A stretch of 64,000 bases of DNA from Oikopleura dioica (GCA_907165135.1 OU015568.1:2356001-2420000), one strand, 5' to 3'. Numbered from the stretch's first letter, positions 1-21,911 are shown. Notes: a model not told the origin generated them from the letters alone. Numbers and translations: made by a program.

Positions 1-467
1 CAGTGCCGAGTTGTTTATCAAAAATTGGTCGACGGCCAATCCGTAGAATCATATCTCGACAGCCCGTTTCCAGCAGAAGGTTGTATCGCTGGACCCTGCT
101 CGAAGAAAGTTGTTGATCTTCCTGTCGACCCACCAACTGAAACTCACAGAGGTACCAATTCATGACTTTTCTCAGATTTTAGATTCAACCTTCAATTCTA
201 GATTCACCGAATGAAGACACTCCTAACCCGATCGAAGACCCCGCTGAAGAAGAAATTGACGTGGATGCCGCTGGAAATGGCAACAAAACTTTCTTGGTCG
301 GAAGTGTCACTGGAATCGTCATTATTGCGATTATTATCGCAGTCATATTTTATGTCAAGAAAAGAGGAAACGAAGATGAAGATGGAACTAAATATACTGT
401 AAGAATTGATCTAACCCGAAAAGGTCTAAGAGCGCATTTTTAGGAGGGAGCCCAGACAGAAGCCTAA
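1..467 (+). CDS. 3' part of a single-pass (type I) membrane protein; 5' end lies outside the window
   Basis: Spliced reading QCRVVYQKL...ETHR|DSPNED...DAAGNGNKTFLVGSVTGIVIIAIIIAVIFYVKKRG...YT|EGAQTEA* with GT-AG introns. Has a hydrophobic TM segment followed by a KKR stop-transfer. Confidence 0.7.
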
Positions 468-782
468 CTTCAACCTTCAAAGCCACTTCTAGAAGAATTC
501 AAAAGATTAACTACACAACTAATGCCAAACAAAAAAATCTAAGAAGAAAGTAACATACAGTAATTATTTCAAACCTGCTCATATCATGATCATTTTTGAC
601 TGTGACAGAAAATCAATTAATAAAAACATAATTCAACGCAATTTTTCCTTTTGAAAACAAAAGGTCAAAAAGGTTTAAACAAACGAGTTTATCTTGGTCT
701 ACGGAGGAGGCCGATTTTTATTCGAAAGCCAAATAGAGAAAACAGCCAAAAACAGAAAGATAGAAATTCCTTTTTAGAAAAA

Positions 783-2078
783 ATGAAACTCAGATCATTT
801 TTAACACCAATTCTTATCCGAACGATGGCCTCAAAGGAATGTCTTTTTTGATTCGAGAGAAGCTCTAGAATTAACTCTCTTTGAGGCTAGAAAAAGAGGG
901 TGATCGTCGATTGTGATCCGGGAATTGATGATGCTCTTGCGATTCAATATCTTTTGCCAAGGGTTCAAAATCTCTTTTCAATTATTCAAAGATCTATATG
1001 AATCCTTCTTTCAAGAATCTCAAATCATCTGTTGAAATTGTCGCTCTAACGATCGTTGATGGAAACGTCAAAACTCATCAAGGCGCTGCAAATGCTCTTA
1101 GAATCTTGAAGAGTAACAATCTTGAGAGTATTCCACCGATTTATCTCGGCGCCGATTTTCCGGAAGAAAGTGATGGATGGTATGGTGAAGATGGTCTTGG
1201 AAATCAACAAGGACTCGAGCCGAGAATCTCGGGTAATGATGTTGAAAAGGGCGACTTTTTAGAGATTGACATGGGCAAATCAGCGGGGCAAGCGATTGTT
1301 GATCTTACTGTAAGTCAAATTGCTTATGCAGCAAATGAATACTTCAGCTTGAACACGATGATATCACAATTTTGTCCCTTGGGCCGCTGACCAACATCGC
1401 TCAAGCTCTCAAACTGGACCCAAGTCTTCCTGAGCGCGTAAATGAGTGGACAGTCATGGGAGGAAATTTGTATGGAGCTGGAAATGCTCCGGGACAGGCA
1501 GCAGAGTACAACTTTTGGTTCGACTATTATTCTGCAGAGAAAGTGATATCAAGGAAGATTTCTCAAGATGAATTTTTCGGCATTTTTCCTACAAACATTA
1601 AGGAATCAATCAAAGCTTTCTTCCTCATTTGACGCCAACGATCGTGACCCTAGAACTCGCACGACAATTTCCCTTCCCGATTTCTTTCTGGCACGATATG
1701 GATGAGTCATTTATAAAATCCGTCTCAAAATATGATGCAGAGCGATACTTTGGAGAGTTTCACCCTCGATGCCAGTTCGACAACGGCCCTGGTTGGAGAA
1801 TTTATGATTTGCTCGCCGCTCTTTGTCACACAAATCCGGAAATCATTACTGAGGCTTGGGAGCATTCTGTCGGAGTGGAGACAGAAGGAAAGCACACGAA
1901 GTAAGTTTTCTTGAATCTTCGAACCCCGAAATGATGGTTTTTCAGAGGGCTGCTTGTAATCGACCGATATTCGATTGGTGATGGCATTTTCGACTATGAA
2001 GGCAAAGCAAAGCTACCAACTACTGTTGATATAGCGAAAATATTGAGACTTCCTGGAATACAGGCATTCGAAAAATAA
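783..2078 (+). CDS. Inosine/uridine-preferring nucleoside hydrolase (IUNH family), multi-exon, copy 1
   Basis: N-terminal VIVDCDPGIDDALAI (DxDxGxDD) motif, VEIVALTIVDGNV, LGPLTNIA, AEYNFWFD and IYDLLA motifs, separated by short introns. Confidence 0.9.
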
Positions 2079-2271
2079 TTCAAGCTCTGTAATAAATGAA
2101 AAACAAGTGATTTTTTTCAAAAACAAAACTATTTTGACCTTGAACTTTCATTTTTAGACTTTACTTTAAGTAACCCGCAGTGGGATATTTAGCACGTGTT
2201 TTTCAGCATTTGCTTAACATTATGACCCTGTTATAAAGCTAGCTCAGGTCAAAGCTTTCCATTTCGTGAAA

Positions 2272-3136
2272 ATGAAATTATTTTTTTCTCTCCTGTCCCT
2301 TTCGAACTCAGTCTATGGAGACCCTTTGAAAGATTTTCCGAGGAGTCTTCAGGTGTCCGAAAGAGATGAAATTTGCAAGTAAAAAAATGTTCTTTCTGAT
2401 AATTTTCACTTACAAATTTGTTTTTCATAGGGATGAAGACCTCCAAAAGGATTGTCAAGCAGTCTGCAGAGCTGAATATAACCGCTGTCGGTTGCTTTGT
2501 GAGACAGAGTATTGTCTCTCGATCTGCCAACGAGAATATGAAAGTAGGATAAAATCATTCTTTCTACTTATCGTTTTGTACAACAGCTTGTTTTGCAAAT
2601 TGCCCATGCGGAGAAAATTGCCCAAATTGAAAGATTGACCGAGGATGGTTGGTACGATAACTGGGATAACGATCAGTAAGAAACTTTGACTGAATATTTC
2701 CAAAAGTTTTTTTAGCCTGGAAGGAGGAGAAGCCCATTCATTTATCTCTCTTCCGTCAGGAAAAATGCTCATGCTTGGAGGCTACGTGCGGGATACATGG
2801 CCAGGGCCAGAGAGATACCAGGATAAAATTTGGGAGTTCGATCTTGATGAAAAATGGTGGGTCGTTGGAAACCTTAAAAAAGTAAGAAAGAAAAATATCA
2901 TCCAGGTCGTTCATGGAGGATCAGCAATGATGATCAACAACTCGATTTTCTACTTTGGTGGAGAATATGAAGAAGAGGAAGGTTCGGACGATTTCGAAAG
3001 CCCGATTCAACGCATTGATCTCGAAAATGAAACGATCGCCGAAGACGGTGTAGAAGTCATCGGCAATCACGATTTCCGCTCTTTCTTTCCGAAGCTTTTC
3101 TTCTCTTTTCTTACGTGCCCTGCTTTAAAATTTTAG
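2272..3136 (+). pseudogene. Secreted Cys-rich plus kelch-like beta-propeller gene, internally truncated (in-frame TGA after CPCGENCPN), copy 1
   Basis: Signal-like MKLFFSLLSLS, then Cys-rich DCQAVC...CRLLC...CLSIC...CPCGENCPN*, then in another frame kelch-like MLGGY...IWEFD...FYFGG. Confidence 0.55.
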
Positions 3137-3638
3137 ATGCTACATTATCGCATACTTAGTTTCTGATCGAAATTAATCTACTTAAAAGTTTTGCAATAAA
3201 AAAAATTTTGTATTCGTGTATATGATATACAGTATATCTCAAGCGACTTTGATCCCAACTTAAAAGATCGAGATTTACTTGTTTTAGGGGCCTGCTTTTG
3301 ATCGATCAGTATTCAGTCGGTGAAGGCATTTTCGATTATGATTGTAAAGTGAAGCTTCATACTGCTGTGAATATGCAAGAAATAATGAGACTACCAGAAA
3401 GACAGGCATATAAGAAATAAATCATGTTTAGCAGTTTTTTTTTATCAATAAAGAAAAGTTTTTTTCCATGAGATACGAACAAACGAATCAACAAAGTGCT
3501 GTTCGTACAGTTAACAGGGTAATAGAAGCTAGTTTTGGTATATCTGAATTAAACAAGTTATTATAAAGAATTCTTTATGATAACATATTATTTTGACTTA
3601 CGACTACCTATCAGCCAAAGAGGCGCCTACAAATCGAA

Positions 3639-4230
3639 TTAGTAATTTACATAAGTGTTTCTTCTTTCAAGTCGAGCGATTCGTTCTTCATATTGAGCCA
3701 CCATCTCGTTCATTTTACGTTCATAGTCATTTCGCATGTCCTCCATTTGTCTTTCCCATTTTTTCTCGTCGTCGTTCATCTTTTTCAACGCATTTTGAAC
3801 GGTCTCTACGTTGTATGTTGTTTGTTTTCTGCAATAAACTAGGAGCTCTTCCGGCGAAATTTTGATCTCTTTCGGTCTATTGACGTCGTACATATGATTC
3901 CAACTTGGAACAGCGGAATTTCCAAGTTCCCAAATTTTGCATCCAGATTTGGAGATTATTGGCCTCAAATGTCTCAGGTTGAACAAATCTTATTTCCGCT
4001 GAATTTTTTTCACAGTCCATTCCAGAGGAAGATCCATTTGATCCCGGGTTCAAGGTTTCATGGTTCTGCAGCGGAACCTCGTTCTGCGGTAAAGTTGAAT
4101 CAGAGCCCTGTAGTCGAGGATTTGGAATGACCATTCCAGACGGAAGTCCTGTAGGCACATTTAGGGAAAATGTGAAGTAATCAGACGTTTCTCCAGGGTT
4201 CTCTTGATTTTCATGATTCTTGCGATTCAT
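3639..4230 (-). CDS. Hypothetical protein with C-terminal coiled coil, copy 1
   Basis: ORFs 3877-4230 and 3639-3986 can be joined by a short intron ending AATAAG. The C-terminus is E/K/R/M-rich (ERQMEDMRNDYERKMNEMVAQYEERIARLE). Confidence 0.55.
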
Positions 4231-4433
4231 GATGCGAGGAATTCTTGCAAATTGAATGAATTCAGACGAGAAATCAAAGAGAAAGAGGAGTCTCTACTTT
4301 CCCTTCGTATTTGCACAGATTTTGATTTCGTTTATTCTTGCGAAATGCAATGTTTACAAGAAGATTCGTAACGGAAAAAAGGGAAAATGTCGCATCTGAA
4401 TAATCTTTCTTATAAAATTAATTCTACATTGGA

Positions 4434-6012
4434 TTACAAGGAAGTTGTTACTGAAGTATCTTCAAGCTCTTCATAATGATGTTTTCTTCTGTATGAGCAT
4501 TTGTACAAAAAGAGAAACAAAAACCAGAGTCCCAAGATCACTAAAATAGTGTTGATATTGGCAAATTTTTCGATTTTACCAATATCGAGGTAAAATGAGA
4601 ACTCCGATAAATCTTGCCCCTCTTCCTTTGGATTGCAAACAGATGAGTCAGGCTCGAAACCTTGCGGAACCGCCGCACTCCCGAACATCATAACCGCCGC
4701 TAGAAGTTGCCCGAGCATCATCATAAATCCGGTTGAGGTTGCTTCTCCGACGGGAAAAGTCGACTCCGCCGCCATTTCGCAACAAAGCGGGAAGAAACTC
4801 AGCCCTCCTAGGCCATAAAGTCCACAAACGACGCCAATCCATGGCTCAATTTCTGGCGTATGCATGATGAAAGCGAAACCAATCGAAGCACCAAGAGCGA
4901 CAAGAAGCAAAATTTTTGCGGCTAAAAACGAAATTTCAAATATTTCAGTTTTCAATTTTACCCGGAGAATGATATTCTTTTCCATCAATGAAAATCGACA
5001 AAATCGCACTGAAAACGATTCCAGTAACAATTATAGCTGAGGCACAAATTGAAGAGCTGAAAGTATTGTCGTATCCCCCAGGGCAGAGAAATTGGACAAG
5101 AAGGGTAAGTTTTGTTGAGAAATGTCCGATTCCGATTGCTCCGCAGACGAGAATCCAAATGTATTCGCGGCCGTATTCCTTGAAGAGATATTTTAGTCGT
5201 TGTTTGAAGGATAGTTCTTCTGCTTTGATTGGGTTTGAGGGTAAATATTTTTGACTATTTTTGTCTTCAAACCCGTTTCTGAAAGATAATTGCCTTCTCC
5301 AGGAATGAAAAAGGACGCAAGAAGCCCCAAAACAACTGGAATGGCAAAGATCAACGCTTGTATCCACAAGTCACTTGCCGATCTCACAATTATCGGGGCT
5401 GTTACTGCAGCAATCATCATCCCCAGTGGATTCGAAAGGGAAGAAAGTGAGTTGGCAAGTAGTCTCTGATCAGCTTGAAACCACTGAGATGCCATTTTTG
5501 TCGGAATAACGAGGATGAAAGCTTGACTGACAGCCATAATTGCAGTCCCGACAAGGGCAACTGGGTAGCACCAATTGGGTGCTGCTATAAAATCGCCATT
5601 TTGATCGAGTTCTTCATGAAAAAGCGTCGATAACCGGACGACTGAGCCAGCAAGATTGAACGCCGCTGCTATCCAAATCGACTTTCTCAGACCAATTATA
5701 TCCACACAATAGATAGCGACAAAGCCAACAGGTATTCCCACCAGCATGAAGAGAACTGAGAACAAATCAACTTGATTGGTGGTTATTCCGAAGTACTCTG
5801 TGGTCGGCCCAGGAATCGGAGCAAATGCTAGCCAGCCCATTGCATTGCCACCTGCAAATTTTATTAACGATATTTTCGCGGGGTTGGTTTTCAAGAAGCA
5901 AATAACCTGAAGTTGCCATGACAGTGAAAAGAGCAAGCCATCGATAATTCGGGTTTATGCTTAGTTTTTCATCTGTTGATTCTTCTTCATTTTCCTCTTC
6001 CGAAAAAGACAT
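4434..6012 (-). CDS. MFS transporter, FLVCR/SLC49 (MFSD7-like) family, copy 1
   Basis: RWLALF...NAMGWLAFAPI, DIIGLRKS (loop-2 motif A), KMASQWF and EMAAESTFPVGEATSTG motifs, with about 12 hydrophobic segments over several exons. Confidence 0.88.
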
Positions 6013-6780
6013 GCCTTCAATGATTTTTTGCAAACAGGTAGTTAGCGAAAAAACTGTGTCAGAAATATTTGCAATGATTGAACAAATAAAGGGGAGTGTG
6101 AAGAAAATTTTTCTCTTTTTTTCAATGATGTCATATTTGCTCGTAAAATGAGTAAAATCTCGTAAATCAAGATCTTGGAAAAAGATTTGTTTTATTCGAA
6201 TTTTGAGGAAAGTAATTGGCAAGGTCACGGAGTTGCTGAGAAGAGGACACCACAAAGCATGTTAGACGAGCGCTGCTTTACCGGAAAATGTGAACGGTCG
6301 TAATGTCAGTGGCTGTCAAGGTGCAAAAACAGCAAAAAAAGAAGACAAACGAAGCTCACGTTCAATTTTTGAACCTTCCTGAGCCATCGGCGCCGACGCC
6401 CAAATGAACCTCAAATTCCATTTCGTCGAGCTTTTTAGCGGTTCAACTGTGGATTCCGCTCTCCGGAGGGAGCTAGTAATGTGCATAGATAAGATAAGTA
6501 CTGATACTACAAGCTCAGAACCGCGCCTCGTCGGGCAGAGGACAAGTCAAAATCTAAAATGAAAAATTTCGAAACGAAAATTCAGCAATTGAGCTTACCT
6601 GAATAGCTACTGCTGTTTCACTTTGGTAAGCATGTAGCATAACTTCATCCCTTAGTGGCGTAAATTGCTTATTCGCCTGCGCCGCGCCGGCCACAGTTCT
6701 AAATCAAATTACGACTCCATTGAATAAGCCCCTCACTTTCGAAAAAATAAAGAAGCGCTTGATTCTTTATTGAAAAAAAT

Positions 6781-7003
6781 TGAAGAAGAAATTGACGTGG
6801 ATGCCGCTGGAAATGGCAACAAAACTTTCTTGGTCGGAAGTGTCACTGGAATCGTCATTATTGCGATTATTATCGCAGTCATATTTTATGTCAAGAAAAG
6901 AGGAAACGAAGATGAAGATGGAACTAAATATACTGTAAGAATTGATCTAACCCGAAAAGGTCTAAGAGCGCATTTTTAGGAGGGAGCCCAGACAGAAGCC
7001 TAA
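6781..7003 (+). pseudogene. 5'-truncated duplicate of the membrane-protein gene (TM exon remnant plus last exon)
   Basis: The duplication breakpoint falls inside the TM-encoding exon, so upstream exons are missing in copy 2. Confidence 0.7.
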
Positions 7004-7318
7004 CTTCAACCTTCAAAGCCACTTCTAGAAGAATTCAAAAGATTAACTACACAACTAATGCCAAACAAAAAAATCTAAGAAGAAAGTAACATACAGTAAT
7101 TATTTCAAACCTGCTCATATCATGATCATTTTTGACTGTGACAGAAAATCAATTAATAAAAACATAATTCAACGCAATTTTTCCTTTTGAAAACAAAAGG
7201 TCAAAAAGGTTTAAACAAACGAGTTTATCTTGGTCTACGGAGGAGGCCGATTTTTATTCGAAAGCCAAATAGAGAAAACAGCCAAAAACAGAAAGATAGA
7301 AATTCCTTTTTAGAAAAA

Positions 7319-8612
7319 ATGAAACTCAGATCATTTTTAACACCAATTCTTATCCGAACGATGGCCTCAAAGGAATGTCTTTTTGATTCGAGAGAAGCTC
7401 TAGAATTAACTCTCTTTGAGGCTAGAAAAAGAGGGTGATCGTCGATTGTGATCCGGGAATTGATGATGCTCTTGCGATTCAATATCTTTTGCCAAGGGTT
7501 CAAAATCTCTTTTCAATTATTCAAAGATCTATATGAATCCTTCTTTCAAGAATCTCAAATCATCTGTTGAAATTGTCGCTCTAACGATCGTTGATGGAAA
7601 CGTCAAAACTCATCAAGGCGCTGCAAATGCTCTTAGAATCTTGAAGAGTAACAATCTTGAGAGTATTCCACCGATTTATCTCGGCGCCGATTTTCCGGAA
7701 GAAAGTGATGGATGGTATGGTGAAGATGGTCTTGGAAATCAACAAGGACTCGAGCCGAGAATCTCGGGTAATGATGTTGAAAAGGGCGACTTTTTAGAGA
7801 TTGACATGGGCAAATCAGCGGGGCAAGCGATTGTTGATCTTACTGTAAGTCAAATTGCTTATGCAGCAAATGAATACTTCAGCTTGAACACGATGATATC
7901 ACAATTTTGTCCCTTGGGCCGCTGACCAACATCGCTCAAGCTCTCAAACTGGACCCAAGTCTTCCTGAGCGCGTAAATGAGTGGACAGTCATGGGAGGAA
8001 ATTTGTATGGAGCTGGAAATGCTCCGGGACAGGCAGCAGAGTACAACTTTTGGTTCGACTATTATTCTGCAGAGAAAGTGATATCAAGGAAGATTTCTCA
8101 AGATGAATTTTTCGGCATTTTCCTACAAACATTAAGGAATCAATCAAAGCTTTCTTCCTCATTTGACGCCAACGATCGTGACCCTAGAACTCGCACGACA
8201 ATTTCCCTTCCCGATTTCTTTCTGGCACGATATGGATGAGTCATTTATAAAATCCGTCTCAAAATATGATGCAGAGCGATACTTTGGAGAGTTTCACCCT
8301 CGATGCCAGTTCGACAACGGCCCTGGTTGGAGAATTTATGATTTGCTCGCCGCTCTTTGTCACACAAATCCGGAAATCATTACTGAGGCTTGGGAGCATT
8401 CTGTCGGAGTGGAGACAGAAGGAAAGCACACGAAGTAAGTTTTCTTGAATCTTCGAACCCCGAAATGATGGTTTTTCAGAGGGCTGCTTGTAATCGACCG
8501 ATATTCGATTGGTGATGGCATTTTCGACTATGAAGGCAAAGCAAAGCTACCAACTACTGTTGATATAGCGAAAATATTGAGACTTCCTGGAATACAGGCA
8601 TTCGAAAAATAA
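7319..8612 (+). CDS. Nucleoside hydrolase (IUNH family), copy 2
   Basis: Same coding sequence as 783-2078. Its two indels fall in inferred introns. Confidence 0.88.
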
Positions 8613-8805
8613 TTCAAGCTCTGTAATAAATGAAAAACAAGTGATTTTTTTCAAAAACAAAACTATTTTGACCTTGAACTTTCATTTTTAGACTTTACTT
8701 TAAGTAACCCGCAGTGGGATATTTAGCACGTGTTTTTCAGCATTTGCTTAACATTATGACCCTGTTATAAAGCTAGCTCAGGTCAAAGCTTTCCATTTCG
8801 TGAAA

Positions 8806-9670
8806 ATGAAATTATTTTTTTCTCTCCTGTCCCTTTCGAACTCAGTCTATGGAGACCCTTTGAAAGATTTTCCGAGGAGTCTTCAGGTGTCCGAAAGAGA
8901 TGAAATTTGCAAGTAAAAAAATGTTCTTTCTGATAATTTTCACTTACAAATTTGTTTTTCATAGGGATGAAGACCTCCAAAAGGATTGCCAAGCAGTCTG
9001 CAGAGCTGAATATAACCGCTGTCGGTTGCTTTGTGAGACAGAGTATTGTCTCTCGATCTGCCAACGAGAATATGAAAGTAGGATAAAATCATTCTTTCTA
9101 CTTATCGTTTTGTACAACAGCTTGTTTTGCAAATTGCCCATGCGGAGAAAATTGCCCAAATTGAAAGATTGACCGAGGATGGTTGGTACGATAACTGGGA
9201 TAACGATCAGTAAGAAACTTTGACTGAATATTTCCAAAAGTTTTTTTAGCCTGGAAGGAGGAGAAGCCCATTCATTTATCTCTCTTCCGTCAGGAAAAAT
9301 GCTCATGCTTGGAGGCTACGTGCGGGATACATGGCCAGGGCCAGAGAGATACCAGGATAAAATTTGGGAGTTCGATCTTGATGAAAAATGGTGGGTCGTT
9401 GGAAACCTTAAAAAAGTAAGAAAGAAAAATATCATCCAGGTCGTTCATGGAGGATCAGCAATGATGATCAACAACTCGATTTTCTACTTTGGTGGAGAAT
9501 ATGAAGAAGAGGAAGGTTCGGACGATTTCGAAAGCCCGATTCAACGCATTGATCTCGAAAATGAAACGATCGCCGAAGACGGTGTAGAAGTCATCGGCAA
9601 TCACGATTTCCGCTCTTTCTTTCCGAAGCTTTTCTTCTCTTTTCTTACGTGCCCTGCTTTAAAATTTTAG
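8806..9670 (+). pseudogene. Truncated Cys-rich/kelch-like gene, copy 2
   Basis: Same as 2272-3136 apart from a synonymous TGT/TGC change. Confidence 0.55.
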
Positions 9671-10174
9671 ATGCTACATTATCGCATACTTAGTTTCTGA
9701 TCGAAATTAATCTACTTAAAAGTTTTGCAATAAAAAAAATTTTGTATTCGTGTATATGATATACAGTATATCTCAAGCGACTTTGATCCCAACTTAAAAG
9801 ATCGAGATTTACTTGTTTTAGGGGCCTGCTTTTGATCGATCAGTATTCAGTCGGTGAAGGCATTTTCGATTATGATTGTAAAGTGAAGCTTCATACTGCT
9901 GTGAATATGCAAGAAATAATGAGACTACCAGAAAGACAGGCATATAAGAAATAAATCATGTTTAGCAGTTTTTTTTTATCAATAAAGAAAAGTTTTTTTC
10001 CATGAGATACGAACAAACGAATCAACAAAGTGCTGTTCGTACAGTTAACAGGGTAATAGAAGCTAGTTTTGGTATATCTGAATTAAACAAGTTATTATAA
10101 AGAATTCTTTATGATAACATATTATTTTTTGACTTACGACTACCTATCAGCCAAAGAGGCGCCTACAAATCGAA

Positions 10175-10764
10175 TTAGTAATTTACATAAGTGTTTCTTC
10201 TTTCAAGTCGAGCGATTCGTTCTTCATATTGAGCCACCATCTCGTTCATTTTACGTTCATAGTCATTTCGCATGTCCTCCATTTGTCTTTCCCATTTTTT
10301 CTCGTCGTCGTTCATCTTTTTCAACGCATTTTGAACGGTCTCTACGTTGTATGTTGTTTGTTTTCTGCAATAAACTAGGAGCTCTTCCGGCGAAATTTTG
10401 ATCTCTTTCGGTCTATTGACGTCGTACATATGATTCCAACTTGGAACAGCGGAATTTCCAAGTTCCCAAATTTTGCATCCAGATTTGGAGATTATTGGCC
10501 TCAAATGTCTCAGGTTGAACAAATCTTATTTCCGCTGAATTTTTCACAGTCCATTCCAGAGGAAGATCCATTTGATCCCGGGTTCAAGGTTTCATGGTTC
10601 TGCAGCGGAACCTCGTTCTGCGGTAAAGTTGAATCAGAGCCCTGTAGTCGAGGATTTGGAATGACCATTCCAGACGGAAGTCCTGTAGGCACATTTAGGG
10701 AAAATGTGAAGTAATCAGACGTTTCTCCAGGGTTCTCTTGATTTTCATGATTCTTGCGATTCAT
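10175..10764 (-). CDS. Hypothetical coiled-coil protein, copy 2
   Basis: Duplicate of 3639-4230. Confidence 0.55.
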
Positions 10765-10967
10765 GATGCGAGGAATTCTTGCAAATTGAATGAATTCAGA
10801 CGAGAAATCAAAGAGAAAGAGGAGTCTCTACTTTCCCTTCGTATTTGCACAGATTTTGATTTCGTTTATTCTTGCGAAATGCAATGTTTACAAGAAGATT
10901 CGTAACGGAAAAAAGGGAAAATGTCGCATCTGAATAATCTTTCTTATAAAATTAATTCTACATTGGA

Positions 10968-12546
10968 TTACAAGGAAGTTGTTACTGAAGTATCTTCAAG
11001 CTCTTCATAATGATGTTTTCTTCTGTATGAGCATTTGTACAAAAAGAGAAACAAAAACCAGAGTCCCAAGATCACTAAAATAGTGTTGATATTGGCAAAT
11101 TTTTCGATTTTACCAATATCGAGGTAAAATGAGAACTCCGATAAATCTTGCCCCTCTTCCTTTGGATTGCAAACAGATGAGTCAGGCTCGAAACCTTGCG
11201 GAACCGCCGCACTCCCGAACATCATAACCGCCGCTAGAAGTTGCCCGAGCATCATCATAAATCCGGTTGAGGTTGCTTCTCCGACGGGAAAAGTCGACTC
11301 CGCCGCCATTTCGCAACAAAGCGGGAAGAAACTCAGCCCTCCTAGGCCATAAAGTCCACAAACGACGCCAATCCATGGCTCAATTTCTGGCGTATGCATG
11401 ATGAAAGCGAAACCAATCGAAGCACCAAGAGCGACAAGAAGCAAAATTTTTGCGGCTAAAAACGAAATTTCAAATATTTCAGTTTTCAATTTTACCCGGA
11501 GAATGATATTCTTTTCCATCAATGAAAATCGACAAAATCGCACTGAAAACGATTCCAGTAACAATTATAGCTGAGGCACAAATTGAAGAGCTGAAAGTAT
11601 TGTCGTATCCCCCAGGGCAGAGAAATTGGACAAGAAGGGTAAGTTTTGTTGAGAAATGTCCGATTCCGATTGCTCCGCAGACGAGAATCCAAATGTATTC
11701 GCGGCCGTATTCCTTGAAGAGATATTTTAGTCGTTGTTTGAAGGATAGTTCTTCTGCTTTGATTGGGTTTGAGGGTAAATATTTTTGACTATTTTTGTCT
11801 TCAAACCCGTTTCTGAAAGATAATTGCCTTCTCCAGGAATGAAAAAGGACGCAAGAAGCCCCAAAACAACTGGAATGGCAAAGATCAACGCTTGTATCCA
11901 CAAGTCACTTGCCGATCTCACAATTATCGGGGCTGTTACTGCAGCAATCATCATCCCCAGTGGATTCGAAAGGGAAGAAAGTGAGTTGGCAAGTAGTCTC
12001 TGATCAGCTTGAAACCACTGAGATGCCATTTTTGTCGGAATAACGAGGATGAAAGCTTGACTGACAGCCATAATTGCAGTCCCGACAAGGGCAACTGGGT
12101 AGCACCAATTGGGTGCTGCTATAAAATCGCCATTTTGATCGAGTTCTTCATGAAAAAGCGTCGATAACCGGACGACTGAGCCAGCAAGATTGAACGCCGC
12201 TGCTATCCAAATCGACTTTCTCAGACCAATTATATCCACACAATAGATAGCGACAAAGCCAACAGGTATTCCCACCAGCATGAAGAGAACTGAGAACAAA
12301 TCAACTTGATTGGTGGTTATTCCGAAGTACTCTGTGGTCGGCCCAGGAATCGGAGCAAATGCTAGCCAGCCCATTGCATTGCCACCTGCAAATTTTATTA
12401 ACGATATTTTCGCGGGGTTGGTTTTCAAGAAGCAAATAACCTGAAGTTGCCATGACAGTGAAAAGAGCAAGCCATCGATAATTCGGGTTTATGCTTAGTT
12501 TTTCATCTGTTGATTCTTCTTCATTTTCCTCTTCCGAAAAAGACAT
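10968..12546 (-). CDS. MFS transporter (FLVCR/SLC49-like), copy 2
   Basis: Duplicate of 4434-6012. Confidence 0.88.
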
Positions 12547-14423
12547 GCCTTCAATGATTTTTTGCAAACAGGTAGTTAGCGAAAAAACTGTGTCAGAAAT
12601 ATTTGCAATGATTGAACAAATAAAGGGGAGTGTGAAGAAAATTTTTCTCTTTTTTTCAATGATGTCATATTTGCTCGTAAAATGAGTAAAATCTCGTAAA
12701 TCAAGATCTTGGAAAAAGATTTGTTTTATTCGAATTTTGAGGAAAGTAATTGGCAAGGTCACGGAGTTGCTGAGAAGAGGACACCACAAAGCATGTTAGA
12801 CGAGCGCTGCTTTACCGGAAAATGTGAACGGTCGTAATGTCAGTGGCTGTCAAGGTGCAAAAACAGCAAAAAAAGAAGACAAACGAAGCTCACGTTCAAT
12901 TTTTGAACCTTCCTGAGCCATCGGCGCCGACGCCCAAATGAACCTCAAATTCCATTTCGTCGAGCTTTTTAGCGGTTCAACTGTGGATTCCGCTCTCCGG
13001 AGGGAGCTAGTAATGTGCATAGATAAGATAAGTACTGATACTACAAGCTCAGAACCGCGCCTCGTCGGGCAGAGGACAAGTCAAAATCTAAAATGAAAAA
13101 TTTCGAAACGAAAATTCAGCAATTGAGCTTACCTGAATAGCTACTGCTGTTTCACTTTGGTAAGCATGTAGCATAACTTCATCCCTTAGTGGCGTAAATT
13201 GCTTATTCGCCTGCGCCGCGCCGGCCACAGTTCTAAATCAAATTACGACTCCATTGAATAAGCCCCTCACTTTCGAAAAAATAAAGAAGCGCTTGATTCT
13301 TTATTGAAAAAAATTGTTTTCACAAAACGTGTTCTTGCAATAACCATTTCTTAGTTGACATAAAATCAAGTCTTTTCCCGCCCTTTTTTTTTAAATAGCT
13401 AATGCGCTGCGTAAATTACTCAAAATAATTACTTGCGAAGTAAATTATCGAAAACGATTTCTAGCAGAAAATATTTTTCTCGATTTTTTTTTCCATAAAA
13501 AATTCAACCGACGATGAAAATAAGAGATAATACCTGATAGACGTTGCAACGGTTTTGTTTTCATTGGCCCCCCATCGCCGGATAACTGAACCGCCATCAC
13601 CCGATTGTGGCAAATTTTATCACTTACAATTATGGTCACAACTCTGTTGAACAAAAATTGCTCAAAAACGCGATCATCCAACGTTTTTTTTTTCTCGAAA
13701 AATATTCTTTCTTTTCAAAAATTGTGACCCTTACAAATCTTGGAATTAAAACTTCAAGCTCCTCGTCAGAAACATAAACATTCGTGTCTTGTATAAAGGG
13801 TTTGAGAAGCATTTTTGAAAAGCGAAACTTTAAAATTCTAGGGCTTTATTAGTTTTCCTCAAACCCGGCCCTTGAAACACAAGATCTCTTGAATTGGACT
13901 CGAACTCGACTAAAGATAAAAATAATTCGACCCTTTTTGACAGCGCAGAATTTTTAAAACGAACCTTCTTTCAGAGACTTTTGCATGATTTTGCAAAAGA
14001 GAAGTTCTTCTTCCAGGACAATTCTAGTGTTTTCCGCGGCATTTGTGCTCTCTTGTTTGCTTCTGAAAATAAAGTCTTTGATGAAAAGAAGGTTGTTTTA
14101 CTTTTTTCTTCGTTCAGCTTTCGGCATTTTTGCGAAATCAAGTCAAAAATAAGCTCTTATCTTTTGAATTTATACGTTCACGCCTAAGGGGATTAGCTCG
14201 AGGGTTAAAAATGGCCTTTTATAGAGCATTAAAATATATTATTTTCTTACCCGGTCATTTTCTCTATCGTAAAGGAAAAATTTAAAATGTCAAAAAGAAA
14301 TCTTTTCAAAAGAATATTTAGTACGGAGTTTTATTATTCTCAAGGGCAATCAGTCCCGCAAAGAGAGAGAAAGCGCAACGCATAAGGAAAGCGAGATCAG
14401 CCGCGTCAGAAGTAGATAGATAG

Positions 14424-14544
14424 GAGGGAGGCGATTTTCTGGCAGTTAGATTTTCTGGCAGTTAGACTTTCTGGCAAAGGCGATTTTCTGGCAATGCCAG
14501 AAAATCTAATATGCCAGAAAGTCTAACTGCCAGAAAATCGCCTC
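14424..14544. repeat. Left terminal inverted repeat of the MULE, built of TTAGA(T/C)TTTCTGGCAG-type subrepeats and internally palindromic
   Basis: Direct reading of the sequence. Confidence 0.9.
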
Positions 14545-15707
14545 TTTTGATTTCACATCTATAGTTAATGATCCTGGAAGATAAAAAACGGAGAGAAGAA
14601 GAGCTCGGAATTCATCTTCTGATTCTTCTGAGAAATAGTCAGGCGCGCGTGGGCGGCGCGCTCCTCCCTTATTCGCCGCGCTGTGCTCGCCTGAATTTAG
14701 TTGATAAATCAACGGTTTTTCAAGCGGAAATGATGAAGATCAGAGAAGAATTAACTGCCAGAGGAATTAGAGAAGAATTAACTGCCTATAAAATTTTGCC
14801 CAATTCGCTTAAAACTTATGAACTGTGTTTCCGCTTTGTTTCGCCTCCAAACTTCAACCTTTCGTATTTAATGTATGATGCGTTTTCTTCTCTCTTTCGA
14901 TGCACAAACCGTTGATAAGTTAAATGTTTCTATTTTTTTTCAATTTTTGACATTAAAGCTTTACGAGTTGCGAAACTAAAATACTGTCTATCATTTTTAA
15001 ATTTTAATTCAGAATTTCAATTTCAGAAAGGACTCAGTGTTGAAAATTGACCATATAAAATAACAACGGGGAGAATATTGAACCCGTTATAATTGTGGGC
15101 CTCCAGAAGAATTTACCCGTTATAATTGTGCCCTTTCTTTAATTTAACATGATTTTGAACTCCTCGAAAGATATTGAAGAACTTCCTGCCAGTATTCTTC
15201 TCGCAGACAACAAAGAAAGCTTCCGAATTCTAGGAACTCGATGAATCAACAAAACGACGTGCTCGATTCCATCTTTAGGAGCTCCAACGAAGAAGAAAAA
15301 TATATAGGAAAGGAGTTTCGAATTTTCTTTTGCAATCAATTTTTTCACTTATTGGTTTATTTTTCAGCGGCTTCAATTAACTGAGACGTTACAAATTTAC
15401 CGGTGCAAATGCGTCAAATACAGTGCTGTGATTGGCTGAATTAGGGACACGTAGTCCTTTGAAAAATGAAAAATCGCCATAAATCCGAAATTTTTTGAGA
15501 TCTCGAAAATCTGAGATGATACTGGCATAGAGCTTGAGATTCTCCGTCGATACGTATAAAGATGTCTTGGGCTACAATGTAACCCTTAGGCGCTAGAGCA
15601 ACAGCAAGTTTGCCCCGGTAATTTTGTAACGGCTCTGACCTATGGAAATCGTCCGTAACGAATGTAACGAGTTTGATGAAAATGTAAGGAGCTTTTTTTA
15701 TAGAACA

Positions 15708-18700
15708 TCAGAAGTCTTCTTCGTCGGAAGTGGCGAGTACTTCTTTTAATTGGCGCATCAAATCGTCATCGTCTTTTTATTATTTATCAAGTTATTCTAA
15801 TTAAATACAATTAAATAAGAAACCATTATATACGTGTAAACAATCCTGGGATATCTGCTTTTCTCATTTCTTCGCGTTTTCGCAATTTCGCATTTTCCGC
15901 CTTCATTTTTTCCAGCTCTTCCCGTAACTCTGCGATCAACTCTTCATTTTGTTCTTTTTTTCTTTGAATGGTTTGACGCCGTTTATTTGCTATATCAGCA
16001 TAGTAGCCCTAAATATTCTGCTATTTTCTTAAAGAAACATACAAGCATTACCTTAGGATCATTTTCTCTTTTTTTTCGATTTCTTTCTTTAAGAATTTTC
16101 TTTTCTTTCGCAATTTGGGCTGCCAAACGCACTTCGGCTTCAGTTTTCTTCTTTTTCTTTTTTGGTGGGGAATCATGCTCGCAATAGGTTGATTTTTTCG
16201 CATTCCGCTTCACTTTTGCGCACAAACTACGCGTATTTTGCGAAGATTCGGGGCGCTCATCTAGAATAATTAACATTCTGCTTGATAAAACTAAACTTAC
16301 GATCCGATTCAGAATCTGACAATGAAAGATCCCGCGTTTTGCGCTGTTTTGCGGATTTTGCGCTGCGAATATACTTCCGTGGCTGCTTGGGTTCAGATAG
16401 AACCAGCTTTTCGGGACTAGTTCTGTCATCAAAATTCCGGTAAGAATCAGATGTTGGACGAGAACGATTAGCTTGTCCGGCTTCGTCATTTTCTTAAATG
16501 AAAGTCATTTATTTTTTAAATATGGACAGTTACCTTGCTCCGATTCTGAAGACGAAGGACGATTTGGAAACTGTTTTCTGATCGTTTCATCTATCTCATC
16601 GGTTTTATCCAGAAGTCGTTCCCAATGTATTGGAGATGGCGATTTTTCAACTAGAAATATTAAATTTTTGATATTTACATTTTTGATATATTACAGTTTT
16701 CAGGCTCACGATCCTCATTGTCCGACGGTAAAGAGTCCACTGGAGGTGGGTCGAACTCATGGATAACAGCTGGCACATCGACTTCATCATTGCTCGTCTC
16801 CTCATCGACTCTTCTTTCCACTCTTTGAACTGGCTGAGCGATTGGCGCCGCAACTCTTCTCAAATCGAATTCTCCTCCTTGCTGAGCGAAAGGATCTGGG
16901 TCAACTTGCTCACCAGCTGTTTCTTGCTCATCGCGAACTGGGGACATCACAGGCATTGCTTCTTGAAACTGGTATGACTAAATAATTTTTATTTTTGTAT
17001 AAAAAATAGTAACTATACGTCAGCTGTTGATTCTTTAATCAAATTTTGAAATACAGCAGTTTCTGGTTGCGTGGCGTTGTTGATAAAATGTCGGAGTTTC
17101 TGAGTAGATTTCAATGACTCGGCCTTTGATCTGGCCCTCATCAAGCCGAAGCCGACAGAAACAATTGCTTCTTCGATTGAGCCATTTTCTGCGCATTTTT
17201 TGTCAAATCTTGCTAGCTGCTCGTAGCGTACAACCGCAACTAAGGCGCACAATCTGTCATTTTTAGTACTTTGCTGGCTGTTGCTCTCAAGCTTAGCAAT
17301 TTCCGTACTGAAGCTTTCACTTTTAAAGCCATTAGCAATGGAGATGACCGTAGATAGCTCTGTCGCATTGTTGATTCCTTGATCCACCAGGGATGAGTTC
17401 TAAACATTTAATTTTAGTTGGAATCGCATCTTCACGAATTCGATGTTTTTACAAGATTTCCCATCGAAAAAAGGTAACTTACCATGATTTCAAGACTGTT
17501 ATTAGTCAAGAATTTTGAACCATTCCTCGCTCCTATCGATAATGCAAGGGCCCATGAACTAGGAGGGAATTTAGCATCGTCATTCAAGTACGTCGTAGAA
17601 AGATATCTGTAGAACTCATTAATCTCGTCTTTGATTAGTGGTGTAGACAGTTCATCAAGTGTTCGACGCAAAAGCTGCATAAATGTGTCGTAGAATGTAG
17701 GTTCGGTCAAGTGAATGAATGGGATCGCATGGATGAGTGCTTGGAGTATCTTTCCATTTTTCTCCCAGAGTGCCAACAGTCCATGACTTTGTAAATATCT
17801 TCTAACACTCTGTAACCAATGAAAGTAGCACCCAACCATGCGTAGATTCTTCTCCGGCCATGTTTCGCGAATCGAATTTCTGAGCCCAGGTTCGAAATCG
17901 GACGAGACAGTTGTAAATTCAGAATCAGGACAAAGTTTCTTTTTGTAGATCAATTTACAGTTTTTCAGGAAAATCGGCTGCTCTGCTATTCAAAACTACC
18001 GAACGGCCGATTGTGGTCCTCATCAACGTTATTACACACGACAAATTCGCTGCCGAACCAAGTAAGTTCAAAATTTTCAATATTGATCATTTCCTTTAAA
18101 GCCTCAAAGACAATCTTGTAGCCTTCTTTAGACTGACCCTTGAGAATAATAAAGAATCTAGGATTAACACTATCATCTCGGTCTCTTGATCCAATAATGA
18201 GGAGTTGACGGTAGCCAAACTTCTTTTGCTGGCCTTTCGTAAAGAATTTACCGTCAACAAACCAGTGTTTTGAAGAGGTCAGCATGCGCAAATCGTGTTG
18301 AGTCGCAAAAGCTAGAGCTTCATCCCATATCGGGCTTCGTTGTTCCGGCGAAAGAAACTCATTCATTAGAATCCATTTTGTTTCACCATCGCCTTTTCGT
18401 GATTTATTAATGAATTATTACTTTTCAATGTTCGTTTCGTGAAACAAAAATGATGTCCTCGTTGTCTCCACCTTACCCCTCATCTTTCGAATCGTTTTTA
18501 ATCAAGCTACATTTGGTTTAGGTTCCATCCGACTAAAGACAGTAAAGTACAATGCAAAACACGAGCACGAATATGTCAATAACTTCAAAGTCTTGCAAAA
18601 CTCGTTCAAAAAAAATGGGCGTAGATAAGGTTTGTCTTCATCAAAATTATAACTCTACACAGAAACAAGAAATTAGACTACGTTGACGCGCCACAAAGTT

Positions 18701-20823
18701 ATGAAGCAGATTCTGAAACCTTCGCAAGACACAATATTCTCTGCGAGAAGAAAGGACTCTGGACTCTGCCAGCTGATTATCCACAGGTAAAGCGTATCAC
18801 TCAGAACTTTCTTTACAGTTATTCAGACAATTCTTGAGTGCTTCCAGCGAGGAAGAGAGACCGCCAGTGATAATGCTATCATTTGAGGCACTCCGACGCC
18901 AGATTTGACAGATTACACGACCCGTACTTATGGCGAGTTCGCTGCAACATCTCAATACCTGGCGAATTCACTGAAAAAGCACGGACTTATCAGTGGAGAA
19001 AGCAAAATTGCGATCTACTCGTCGAATTGCTACGAATACGACGCAGTAATCATTGGAGGATACTATCAAAATATATGCAATGTTTCGCTTTACGATACTT
19101 TTGGTGAACAAGCAGTCAAATACATTCTCGAGCACGTAAGTTTACAACTTCTTTACGAGATTATTTTTACTTTTTCTTCAGATTGAAGCTCCAATCTGCT
19201 TCGTTCAAAATCAAAAGAAACTTGACCTCATTCTCAAAATCAAGCCTGCTCATCTTCAAACAATCGTTGTGTTTCGAAAATTCAAGAAGGTCAAGTCCTC
19301 CAATTATAAAATCATAAGTTTCGACGATTTTATTGCAATCGGAAAAGACAGCTCGTTTGATAATGTTCCGCCGACTTCTTCAGGTAAAAATGATAAAAAT
19401 AGGGGCGATCATTTAATTTCATTATTCAGACATTGCTACGATCAATTACACATCCGACACGACTGGCGATCCGAAAGGCGTCGTCTTGACTCACAAGAAC
19501 ATCTGCACCGTCTGCTGTGGCATTACAATCTTCTCGGTTAAAGAGCCTTGGAAAACAAGCGACGTCTGGTTCAGCTATTTGCCGATGGCTAATATTTTTT
19601 AAACTTGTTGACGTGCCCGACATGGATTATTATGCGCGCGAAGGAAAAGGAGAAATCTGCTTCCGTGGCGACAACGTCATGCAAAGTAATTTCCTTTCAC
19701 CACTGTCAAGTGTCTCACACTTCGTTCAATGGTTTAAAAAGTTTTTCGACGCTAACTATCAGGTAAATCAAAAAGAACGCGAAATCCTTTTTCAATTCTG
19801 ATTTCAAAGGGAGAACCTCTTGGTCCCGTTCATGCGAGAGCGAACGCTGGTGTGACTCCCCGCTTCAAATTCGCTGCAGTTTCTACAACAGCAAAGAAAG
19901 CACCCGCTCGAGCTGGAGCTCCCGCTGCTCGGGTCCTCGAAGCCCCAAGAACTCCTGCATCGTAAGAGAAGCCGCTTGCGGCTTCGAATTTATGTTAGTT
20001 CAGGGAAAGACAAAGGAAAAAGAAGAACGCACGGCCTCTGCTTTTCTACCGTATCAAGGATGTCCCAAGCTCTAAAGGATAATTCAACTCAAGATTTAAC
20101 TAAACTATATTCACTGTCATTTCTTTCGTGCATCTGTGCTCGGTCAAATAAATCACTTTCCTAGTACTGTCATCCAGTCTTCCAAGCGTCGAGGATCAGG
20201 AACTGTAGCGGCCTTTATTTTTCTTTCGTACTTTCTGGAATTCTGAGCAAGACGTCTCATCTCCTTTTTCGTGAAAAGATTGCCTCTTTCCATGCTCGAA
20301 AGTTGTGAATCTTTTTGAACTTCTCCACGAATTGTCTGTTGACTTTTTGGGCGAATTTGGTTCCTGTTGAGCATGGACACAGTCGTTGCGTACTGTAATC
20401 GCTTCTTTTCGAGTGCATCGTTCTTCAGACATTTATTCATGTGAATGTCTACTTTCGACTCTAGCTTTCCACATCGCCAATTGCTGAGCTCAAAAAAACG
20501 AGGAGATTCCATATCAACAACTTTTGCAAACATCCAAATCTTCGTTGAACAGCGGAATGAAGCGTCTTTCGAATATGATTGATTTTCACACTCGACTCGC
20601 ATCTTGAAACGGAAGTCAGGATCGTCGTTTTTAGAATGCAGAATCGTTTTCTTCGCTTTTCTTGCTTTGAAAGCAAATGATCTGGAAGCAACTTTGACGA
20701 GGAAGGATGCATTGTTTTTTGAGTTTCGTTGAATCGTTACCAAGGCAGGGTTTTCGACAGTACCACCAATGTTTTCTTACACGTTTTATAAAAATTCATT
20801 GACAAAGGCCACTTTTGACCCAT
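15708..20823 (-). CDS. MULE transposase, about 10 exons: N-terminal Zn-finger-like region, DDE core, long acidic/basic coiled C-terminus
   Basis: WFVDGKFF (first Asp), [18 protein letters not shown]...VGCYFHW (second Asp plus CxFH) and TNNSLE (Glu) match the MULE core. The ORF at 20153-20743 has C...C...H residues. Frame-consistent splice sites can be placed between all ORFs. The first and last micro-exons are tentative. Confidence 0.8.
18615..19685 (+). pseudogene. Captured, decayed long-chain fatty-acyl-CoA synthetase (ACSL-like) fragment with its introns retained
   Basis: [17 protein letters not shown]...[40 protein letters not shown] and [11 protein letters not shown] motifs. Decay: in-frame TGA at 18884-18886, G>D in the AMP-binding loop, and a large internal deletion at about 19600. 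Confidence 0.85.
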
Positions 20824-21387
20824 TTATTCAAGATTAATAGCTGTAGCAAACATAAATCAGCTTCTTCCGGGAATTTCTGTGTTAATCACCCGGTGTTTGC
20901 ATCTGATTTCGAGTACTTGGTCACAGTGAGCACCCACTGAGATAATGGCGCACGCAAATGCTTTTTGAAACTGAACTTGTTATAAAACTATCCTGAAAAT
21001 TCTTCCTCAGAAGGTGGTGGAATCGGTGTCAGTTTCAACATTTTTCTATCCGCATTCTCTTCATCATCCTCCATTTTCTCAGAAAAATCAAAATCTAACT
21101 TTTCAGCTGCCTGTTAACCCGTTTGTTACTCCGAAAATAGCAAGAACGAACTGTGGATGCTGCCCTCATTCTATTTTTAGCGCAGAAATTTCAATTCCAA
21201 ATTCGTCGTCTTTTTTAGCGCCCTGAATAGTCGGCTTTTAGATCAAACGCTCCCGTCGAAAGGTGCAAACTCCTGCTGAAACTGCTCCGGAATGAAATTT
21301 GTGTGATAATCACCAGTTTTTCGAATTTATAAATGATTTTATTAAAAAGAGTTTTTTGCAGAGTTTCAAATAATATGCATACTAAAA

Positions 21388-21539
21388 AGGCGATTTTCTG
21401 GCAGTTAGACTTTCTGGCAGTTAGATTTTCTGGCAAAGGCGATTTTCTGGAAGTTAGATTTTCTGGCAGTGCCAGAAAATCGCCTTTGCCAGAAAGTCTA
21501 ACTGCCAGAAAATCTAACTGCCAGAAAATCGCCTCTCTC
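21388..21539. repeat. Right terminal inverted repeat of the MULE (subrepeat-built, palindromic)
   Basis: Reverse complement of the left TIR, with one extra subrepeat module. Confidence 0.9.
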
Positions 21540-21911
21540 GATAGATAGTGTTTATCCTGGCTAGACTTATCTCTTCGACCGCGGCGGACGTACTTTTTCA
21601 ACCACGTGACTGTTTGCTTTGTTCACCGCTCAACTGAATAACCGTTCAAAATGTGCTGATTATCGCTTTAGATTTTGGACGAATCAGACTGCACCGTTTT
21701 CAAGAGCTCTAGAACTTGATAAGATGGAAAGAATTGTCAAATATTAAGGGGGTTGCCTCCGCTATGTCATTTTTCTAATCAGCTGATAACAAATCATTTC
21801 AAAATCTTCCTATAACACACACTTTCATCGCTCGTAAAAACGATGACTAACCCGGTCCACGCGCGGTTATTTTCAAGAACATTTTCTTCCTCATCATTTT
21901 TCTTTCATAAA

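Follow-up and report, generated by a model that had tools for sequence, protein, structure and literature searches.

Host-gene fragments inside a probable GA-AG intron of the transposase gene of a recently moved Mutator-like element in Oikopleura dioica

Introduction

How could a DNA transposon carry long pieces of its host's genes inside the gene for its own transposase and still encode that transposase? The question is raised by a 64-kb stretch of the Oikopleura dioica OKI2018_I69 assembly (Okinawa lineage; GCA_907165135.1), which we refer to throughout as the window. It contains a Mutator-like element (MULE) with a transposase gene on the minus strand, and between positions 20161 and 18392 this gene is interrupted by 1768 nt that carry pieces of an AMP-binding/ACSL gene on the plus strand, that is, antisense to the transposase. 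An initial annotation of the locus had proposed that these pieces are a pseudogene captured at the DNA level, that they lie within an intron of the transposase gene, and that the element is a Pack-MULE.

The explanation that we favor, with moderate confidence, is a recently active and probably autonomous O. dioica MULE that carries a mosaic of host-gene fragments in a GA-AG intron of its transposase gene. The argument draws on the reading frame across the interruption, a related lineage interrupted at the same nucleotide, the genomic copies of the element and the composition of the cargo.

Results

The interruption coincides with an in-frame GA-AG junction

Both exon edges given by the initial annotation were confirmed on the minus strand. 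The upstream exon (exon 1) ends at 20161 in EDWMTVLG, followed by K and a stop codon if read on, and the downstream exon (exon 2) starts at 18392 and leads into WFVDGKFF once G/GC is joined. Joining 20161 to 18392 yields VLG-DGETKW in frame, and the spliced product is predicted to read GTACTAG/GCGATGGTG. When donor and acceptor combinations near the borders were enumerated on the sequence, CTAG/GAAAGT...GAAAAG/GC was the sole in-frame pair with an AG acceptor. Two canonical donors were considered and rejected as sources of a full-length transposase: the GT that lies 4 nt past the GA donor (AAA/GTGATT) has no in-frame AG acceptor and gives VLGKRW-stop with the AAAAG/ acceptor, and ACA/GTACTA has no in-frame AG acceptor either. 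The in-frame join proposed earlier holds, with a GA-AG rather than a GT-AG junction. If left unspliced, exon 1 runs into a conserved stop, and no conserved ATG is present in exon 2.

The wider protein family places the junction where an intron is needed, as had been claimed. Searching 1.8 billion representative sequences with the exon 3 open reading frame (ORF; 17432-17953) by phmmer returned 222 relatives; the MULE domain PF10551 scored above cut-off in all 9 of the longer relatives that were scanned, two of which also carried FLYWCH. A profile of 27 full-length relatives aligned to the conceptually joined product as one stretch (E = 2.6e-53) in which both junctions were free of gaps and the catalytic residues D (WFVDGKFF), D (VSSDFEPG) and E (TNNSLEIM) fell into place. 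The direct Pfam match of the window's single exons to MULE was weak (E = 0.07), because the second putative intron divides the domain. The candidate AAG/GAA donor of this intron 2 is present in the window and in a related element, L005, where an in-frame stop just past the donor requires the exon to end at that point.

A GA-AG junction agrees with published data on O. dioica. RNA-supported GA-AG introns of this species show an AG/GAA donor pattern (PMC7072748), which the donor of the interruption fits, and 11% of the introns in this assembly are non-canonical (PMC8008620). Taken as sequence evidence, these features make 18393-20160 very probably a non-canonical GA-AG intron of the transposase gene, here called intron 1.

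A related lineage keeps the intron ends around different cargo

Two sequences from two metagenome assemblies, L005 and L011, are 99.7% alike mutually and approximately 70-78% alike to the window in the exons. Both are interrupted at the same nucleotide as the window's transposase, and both keep the ends of the interruption (the 5'-most 17 nt and the 3'-most 21 nt). The 1042-nt interior of L005 is unrelated to the window's cargo and includes an antisense fragment of VPS28 (Pfam E = 7.7e-13). At the protein level the window and L005 are 76% identical in exon 1 and 75% in exon 2, and the ratios of nonsynonymous to synonymous substitution (dN/dS) are 0.135, 0.19 and 0.11 in exons 1, 2 and 3, at a synonymous divergence (dS) of approximately 1.2. 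Judged by these ratios, both exons that flank intron 1 are under purifying selection. A gene that has been interrupted since a common ancestor and is yet under selection implies that the interruption must be removed from the RNA. A search for further relatives with the N-terminal exon returned the L005/L011 family only, and the comparison of one intron with different cargo is thus one between two families.

The interior of L005 (937-1939, also in L011) comprises, besides the VPS28 fragment at 932-1099 on the minus strand, more antisense ORF-like pieces with no assigned family. A more distant MULE (L006-L009; protein P0003, approximately 35-40% amino acid identity) shares its marine metagenome and Logan samples with L005/L011 and with L012, an ACSL locus described below, which suggests that larvacean DNA of several MULE lineages is present in these samples.

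Five near-identical copies with distinct target site duplications

The element has five genomic copies, namely the window's own (found again as L002, on the PAR chromosome) and four others (L001, L003, L004 and L010) spread over three chromosomes. These four are 99.86-99.89% identical to the window over 7.1 kb, exactly from 14424 to 21539 and not beyond, and a perfect 9-bp target site duplication (TSD) flanks each of the five copies: GATAGATAG, CGTGAAGTG, CGATTTCCA, AAGAACTTG and TTATTTTTC. A single substitution distinguishes the copies in 5 x 7.1 kb; the remaining differences are in homopolymer lengths, as expected because the assembly is Nanopore-based. An inverted-repeat search delimited terminal inverted repeats (TIRs) of 86 nt that are 98% complementary and set in repeat-rich ends of 135-170 nt. 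The element classifies as a MULE on three grounds: TSDs of 9 bp, long TIRs and a DDE transposase with homology to PF10551 proteins.

An assembly artefact can be ruled out by the five loci with different flanks and by the presence of the sequence in DNA runs: 88-97% of the element's sequence words were found in runs from two samples of one study, and 8% in a run of another study. The near identity of the five copies and their separate TSDs mean that the cargo-bearing element is mobile. The element is real and has moved very recently with its whole content. Searching the collection with the C-terminal protein returned the genes of these five copies only, with no cargo-free source. We infer that the encoded transposase moved the five copies, and the sequence makes autonomy of the element plausible.

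Intact or disrupted transposase

Several observations weigh against an intact, spliced transposase gene. No in-frame ATG of exon 1 is conserved between the window and L005, and a further exon upstream of exon 1 is likely. At 1.77 kb, intron 1 is very long against the O. dioica median of 49 bp (PMC7072748, PMC8008620), and two, possibly three, consecutive non-canonical introns must be assumed. Some of the homopolymer differences between the copies affect exons and, unless they are assembly noise, would cause frameshifts. The dN/dS values record old selection and are no evidence for an active protein from today's copies. Finally, no RNA read or contig of the element was found in three raw-read RNA-seq runs, which bear the species label O. 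dioica (0-1 reads at an identity of at least 99%), or in one metatranscriptome, and the transposase part was absent from every indexed RNA run. Reads that match ACSL and the second host gene of the cargo (gene B, see below) in the three runs are only approximately 88-95% alike to the window and align to it over part of their length, and most ACSL exons have no reads at 88% or above. The runs therefore apparently derive from another cryptic lineage, which makes the absence of element reads uninformative rather than negative.

The strongest alternative is that the cargo merely disrupts the transposase, that the five copies, as true Pack-MULEs with the remains of a dead transposase, cannot move themselves and were mobilized in trans by a different MULE, and that the in-frame GA-AG junction is a coincidence. 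It would account for the unseen transcript, for the non-canonical junction and for an exon 1 with no conserved start codon, and it agrees with the existing annotation, which models the C-terminal half only, from an internal Met (model P0151 starts at 17680, inside exon 3). A disrupted gene does not readily explain, however, why every exon has an open frame and D, D and E are still there, nor why the search of the collection with the C-terminal protein found no cargo-free source. A dead gene interrupted since the common ancestor would lose the signal seen in L005/L011, where the interruption falls at the same nucleotide with conserved ends and the flanking exons have a dN/dS of approximately 0.15. 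We consider a disrupted transposase unlikely, while giving it appreciable weight.

An inverted repeat at the intron ends

Between 4 and 6 nt inside both junctions, intron 1 carries an inverted repeat of 10 perfect nt (13-15 nt with a bulge), which is at the same time an AATAAA/ATTAAA hexamer on each strand. The window's arms, GTGATTTATT and AATAAATCAC, correspond in L005 to GTGATTTAAT and ATTAAATCAC, with a change on both arms. A 4-nt direct repeat, GAAA at either side, flanks the inverted repeat and is imperfect in L005 (GAAA and AAAA). The repeat might pair into a stem and so draw the two splice sites close to each other, be a relic of an old nested transposon, or be a pair of poly(A) hexamers.

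The second of these possibilities amounts to a different account of the whole interruption, in which 18393-20160 is, or began as, a nested transposon similar to an introner, with ends GTGATTTATT...AATAAATCAC between the GAAA repeats and a cargo of its own, and is removed like an intron. Its marks would be the inverted repeat and the direct repeat at the junctions, found in the same arrangement in L005 with both arms changed; excision of the repeat-bounded unit with one GAAA would likewise leave the frame open. Such ends are not in excess in the 64-kb window, where 3 matches were found against 1.9 expected, the direct repeat in L005 is imperfect, and the poly(A)-type hexamers provide another reason for the ends to be conserved. 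The same ends around unrelated interiors at a dS of approximately 1.2 indicate that any insertion is ancient and that the stretch is now intron-like. The initial annotation had named TIRs and a TSD of the inserted segment's own as a sign of later, independent insertion; a short inverted repeat and a 4-nt direct repeat are indeed there, and the conservation of the repeat in L005 around other cargo argues for an old intron and against a later insertion. We regard a nested transposon as improbable, and such an origin would in any case be compatible with the intron reading rather than exclude it.

The cargo is a mosaic of host-gene fragments

Pfam assigned three pieces of the cargo to PF00501 (E = 6e-11, 2e-15 and 2.5e-3; profile positions 18-91, 163-218 and 354-381 of 384). 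A search with one cargo exon found L012, a 4.2-kb Logan contig with a multi-exon ACSL gene beside a sulfotransferase gene, and this arrangement identifies the contig, which comes from a close relative, as a genuine ACSL locus. The alignment of cargo 18662-19598 with L012 912-1845, introns included, has 90.7% identity and three gap positions only, and that of cargo 19599-19717 with L012 2385-2503 has 96.6% identity; 539 nt of the L012 locus are absent from the cargo at the T-run junction 19598/19599. The three GT..AG introns of the cargo ACSL (18787-18826, 19136-19181 and 19383-19428) are colinear with L012, and in metatranscriptome contigs the first two have been removed by splicing. Their identical positions at the source locus mean that the cargo was copied from DNA, which bears out the capture proposed in the initial annotation.

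The captured ACSL sequence has neither a full AMP-binding domain nor intact motifs nor an uninterrupted frame. It has a TGA nonsense codon at 18884-18886, where L012 has TGT, and two altered motifs (P-loop TSGTTG to TSDTTG; His motif AHIF to ANIF). On its sequence the cargo ACSL is a decaying pseudogene. A phmmer search of the PDB with an ACSL exon gave no match.

Contrary to what had been supposed, the cargo is not ACSL alone. RNA reads that are 90-95% alike to the window connect 18632 straight to 19724, and a metatranscriptome contig runs from 18520-18631 through 49 other letters to 19721-19760 and on to 19962, with a plus-strand GT..AG intron (19763-19809) removed. Since 18520-18632 and 19721-19762 are adjacent in transcripts, fragments of another gene flank the ACSL pieces; a Pfam scan of these gene B exons assigned no family. 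As read from the alignments, the cargo is a mosaic that begins with gene B, continues with the first and then the second ACSL part, and returns to gene B before a last piece; the pattern fits serial template switching.

That the antisense cargo is functional, with double-stranded or small RNAs from transposase pre-mRNA or convergent transcription acting on host ACSL and the second gene to the benefit of element or host, seems very improbable to us: the cargo is antisense in both families, its 91-97% identity with the ACSL source would suffice for small-RNA targeting, and both Pack-MULEs and Pack-TIRs have been suggested to act through antisense or small RNAs (PMC8277862), but no expression of the element was detected, the cargo differs wholly between the families and decays as neutral passenger DNA does (stop, motif loss, deletion), and selection against sense-oriented splice sites within an intron is a simpler account of the orientation. 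Antisense regulation of ACSL, a speculative idea, has a lower probability than neutral passenger DNA kept in the orientation that is harmless to splicing.

Features of the element and its surroundings

The features of the element are collected in Table 1.

Table 1. Coordinates of the Mutator-like element, its transposase gene and its cargo in the window
Feature	Position	Strand	Remarks
Complete MULE	14424-21539	transposase on minus	7116 bp; homology to 4 other copies begins and ends exactly at these bases
Left TSD	14415-14423		GATAGATAG; identical 9-mer at 21540-21548
Right TSD	21540-21548		GATAGATAG
Left TIR	14424-14509, within 14424-14558		with palindromic subterminal array of ~16-nt GATTTTCTGGCAGTTA motif
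Right TIR	21454-21539, within 21373-21539		with palindromic subterminal array
Transposase exon 1	20161-20775	minus	N-terminal Cys/His-rich region; aligns to N-terminal part of MULE family profile
Intron 1 (putative)	18393-20160	minus	GA-AG: CTAG/GAAAGT...CGAAAAG/GC; 1768 nt; contains cargo
Transposase exon 2	18094-18392	minus	first catalytic Asp, WFVDGKFF; family profile alignment continues through exon 2
Intron 2 (model)	17939-18093	minus	GA-AG: AAG/GAAATG...AAAAAG/AAA; divides Pfam MULE domain
Transposase exon 3	17483-17938	minus	second Asp in VSSDFEPG, Glu in TNNSLEIM
Downstream transposase exons, C-terminal extension	15708-17399	minus	annotated proteins P0151 and P0002 map here with canonical introns
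5' arm of intron-end inverted repeat	20147-20156	minus	GTGATTTATT; pairs with 18399-18408
3' arm of intron-end inverted repeat	18399-18408	minus	AATAAATCAC; also poly(A)-signal hexamer
Gene B fragment 1 (second host gene)	18520-18632	plus	RNA reads and metatranscriptome contig
ACSL segment 1	18662-19598	plus	exons 18663-18786, 18827-19135, 19182-19382, 19429-19598; three retained introns
ACSL segment 2	19599-19717	plus	part of late exon and ~30 nt of next intron
Gene B fragment 2	19721-19962	plus	exons 19721-19762, 19810-19962; intron 19763-19809
Further transcribed fragment	19998-20124	not assigned	3' part of gene B or third gene; metatranscriptome contig 97% alike, flanks unlike window

Each end of the element is itself palindromic and made of GATTTTCTGGCAGTTA repeats, giving foldback-like ends with multiple putative transposase-binding repeats. 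Upstream of exon 1, an ATG-initiated ORF on the minus strand (21074-20993; MEDDEENADRK...) is a candidate first exon that could be joined to exon 1 in frame through an AG/GA...AG intron; it is not conserved in L005. Within putative intron 2, 41 nt (18017-18057) match a highly expressed, unrelated transcript with two mismatches in three RNA runs; the matching reads differ from the window on both sides, and this may be a second, tiny captured fragment. At the chromosome 2 copy (L003, 3817-9843), the annotation joins the cargo's ACSL exons to a flanking LDL-receptor class A exon in one gene model of 382 amino acids, and this model is a chimera of the prediction or may reflect a chimeric transcript. 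In the window, immediately before the element on its upstream side, two adjacent direct copies of 6.54 kb (245-6782 and 6781-13316) are 99.89% identical and represent a tandem segmental or assembly duplication.

Discussion

The sequence of events that would best fit these observations starts with an old GA-AG intron between the N-terminal, putatively DNA-binding exon and the first catalytic exon. Intron 1 would later have been filled with passenger DNA, two intron-containing pieces of ACSL amid pieces of a second gene, and these fragments were copied at the DNA level, the most likely mechanism being a switch of template while the element was repaired or replicated. With this passenger the element has reached at least five loci. 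Because the passenger lies inside an intron, the reading frame of the transposase would stay intact, and in the antisense orientation the passenger's own splice sites cannot disturb the splicing of the transposase pre-mRNA.

Introns that derive from transposable elements offer one comparison. Huff et al. in 2016 reportedly described introners as such introns, and Henriet et al. in 2019 are said to have found non-canonical introns of Fritillaria borealis that derive from miniature inverted-repeat transposable elements. Like these, intron 1 combines a short terminal inverted repeat with a direct repeat that flanks it, and could be removed in frame. It differs in that the window holds no repeated family with these ends, and the unit has been kept by descent in a transposase gene instead of being scattered in host genes.

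Gene capture by Mutator elements is a textbook phenomenon of plants, where it is linked to non-autonomous elements. MULEs with an extra host-derived gene beside the transposase are exemplified by MuDR, with mudrB, and by the KI-MULE/ULP1 elements. The O. dioica element resembles these in that it encodes a transposase and has added host-derived sequence between its TIRs (the comparison follows in part PMC6446971 and PMC8277862). In MuDR and the KI-MULE/ULP1 elements, however, the extra sequence is a separate gene, whereas here it is a pseudogene mosaic antisense in a transposase intron.

With the plant Pack-MULEs (Jiang et al. 2004, as cited in PMC6446971 and PMC8277862) the element shares Mutator-type TIRs, 9-bp TSDs and fragments of several genes copied at the DNA level with their introns, as well as their rearrangement into a chimera that transposition has multiplied at several loci, each with a TSD of its own. 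Plant Pack-MULEs are by definition non-autonomous and have lost their transposase; the O. dioica element has a complete transposase reading frame with the cargo in its intron, and its host is a chordate. The name given to it initially therefore describes well a MULE with host-gene fragments between its TIRs, but an element with open transposase exons of its own is not a Pack-MULE in the strict sense. Among animals, Tan et al. (2021) found no Pack-MULE in 100 reference genomes, and the one case that they described was the non-autonomous Ssk-FB4 (PMC8277862). Comparable to our case are the animal Pack-TIRs and Drosophila Ssk-FB4, TIR transposons with captured host sequence, of which Ssk-FB4 is multicopy with 9-10-bp TSDs, has been assigned to the MULEs and has been attributed to template switching (PMC8277862). 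FB4 is non-autonomous, moved by a transposase that is not known, and the median capture was 224 bp (PMC8277862), as against the approximately 1.6 kb of cargo in the 1768-nt intron here.

As an intron, the interruption agrees with other GA-AG introns of O. dioica in its AG/GAA donor and AG acceptor, and departs from them in its 1768 nt as against the 49-nt median, in its place in a transposon gene and in the inverted repeat at its ends (PMC7072748, PMC8008620); those introns have RNA support, whereas intron 1 is predicted from sequence. In the literature searched, whose coverage was limited so that this is absence of evidence only, we found no description of cargo in a transposase intron or of MULEs in Oikopleura.

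A broader idea, to which we give a low but real chance, is that intron 1 is a standing "cargo bay": a conserved non-canonical intron with a covarying end repeat that doubles as a poly(A) hexamer on each strand, through which a self-sufficient transposon could take up, exchange and spread host fragments and still retain its transposase. The weakness of the intron may even serve as a switch of the kind known from P elements, with splicing regulated and unspliced RNA, which meets the conserved stop directly behind exon 1, encoding the N-terminal DNA-binding part only.

In a chordate whose genome is among the smallest of any animal, a MULE has moved very recently that still encodes a transposase and has a multi-gene mosaic in its own putative intron, and a sister element has different host DNA at the same position. 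If the splicing is as predicted, this would be a route by which an autonomous DNA transposon shuffles and duplicates host exons while retaining its mobility. It would also link cargo capture by a transposable element to the unusual GA-AG splicing of Oikopleura, and would make a DNA transposon that is apparently live accessible to experiment in a tunicate kept in the laboratory.

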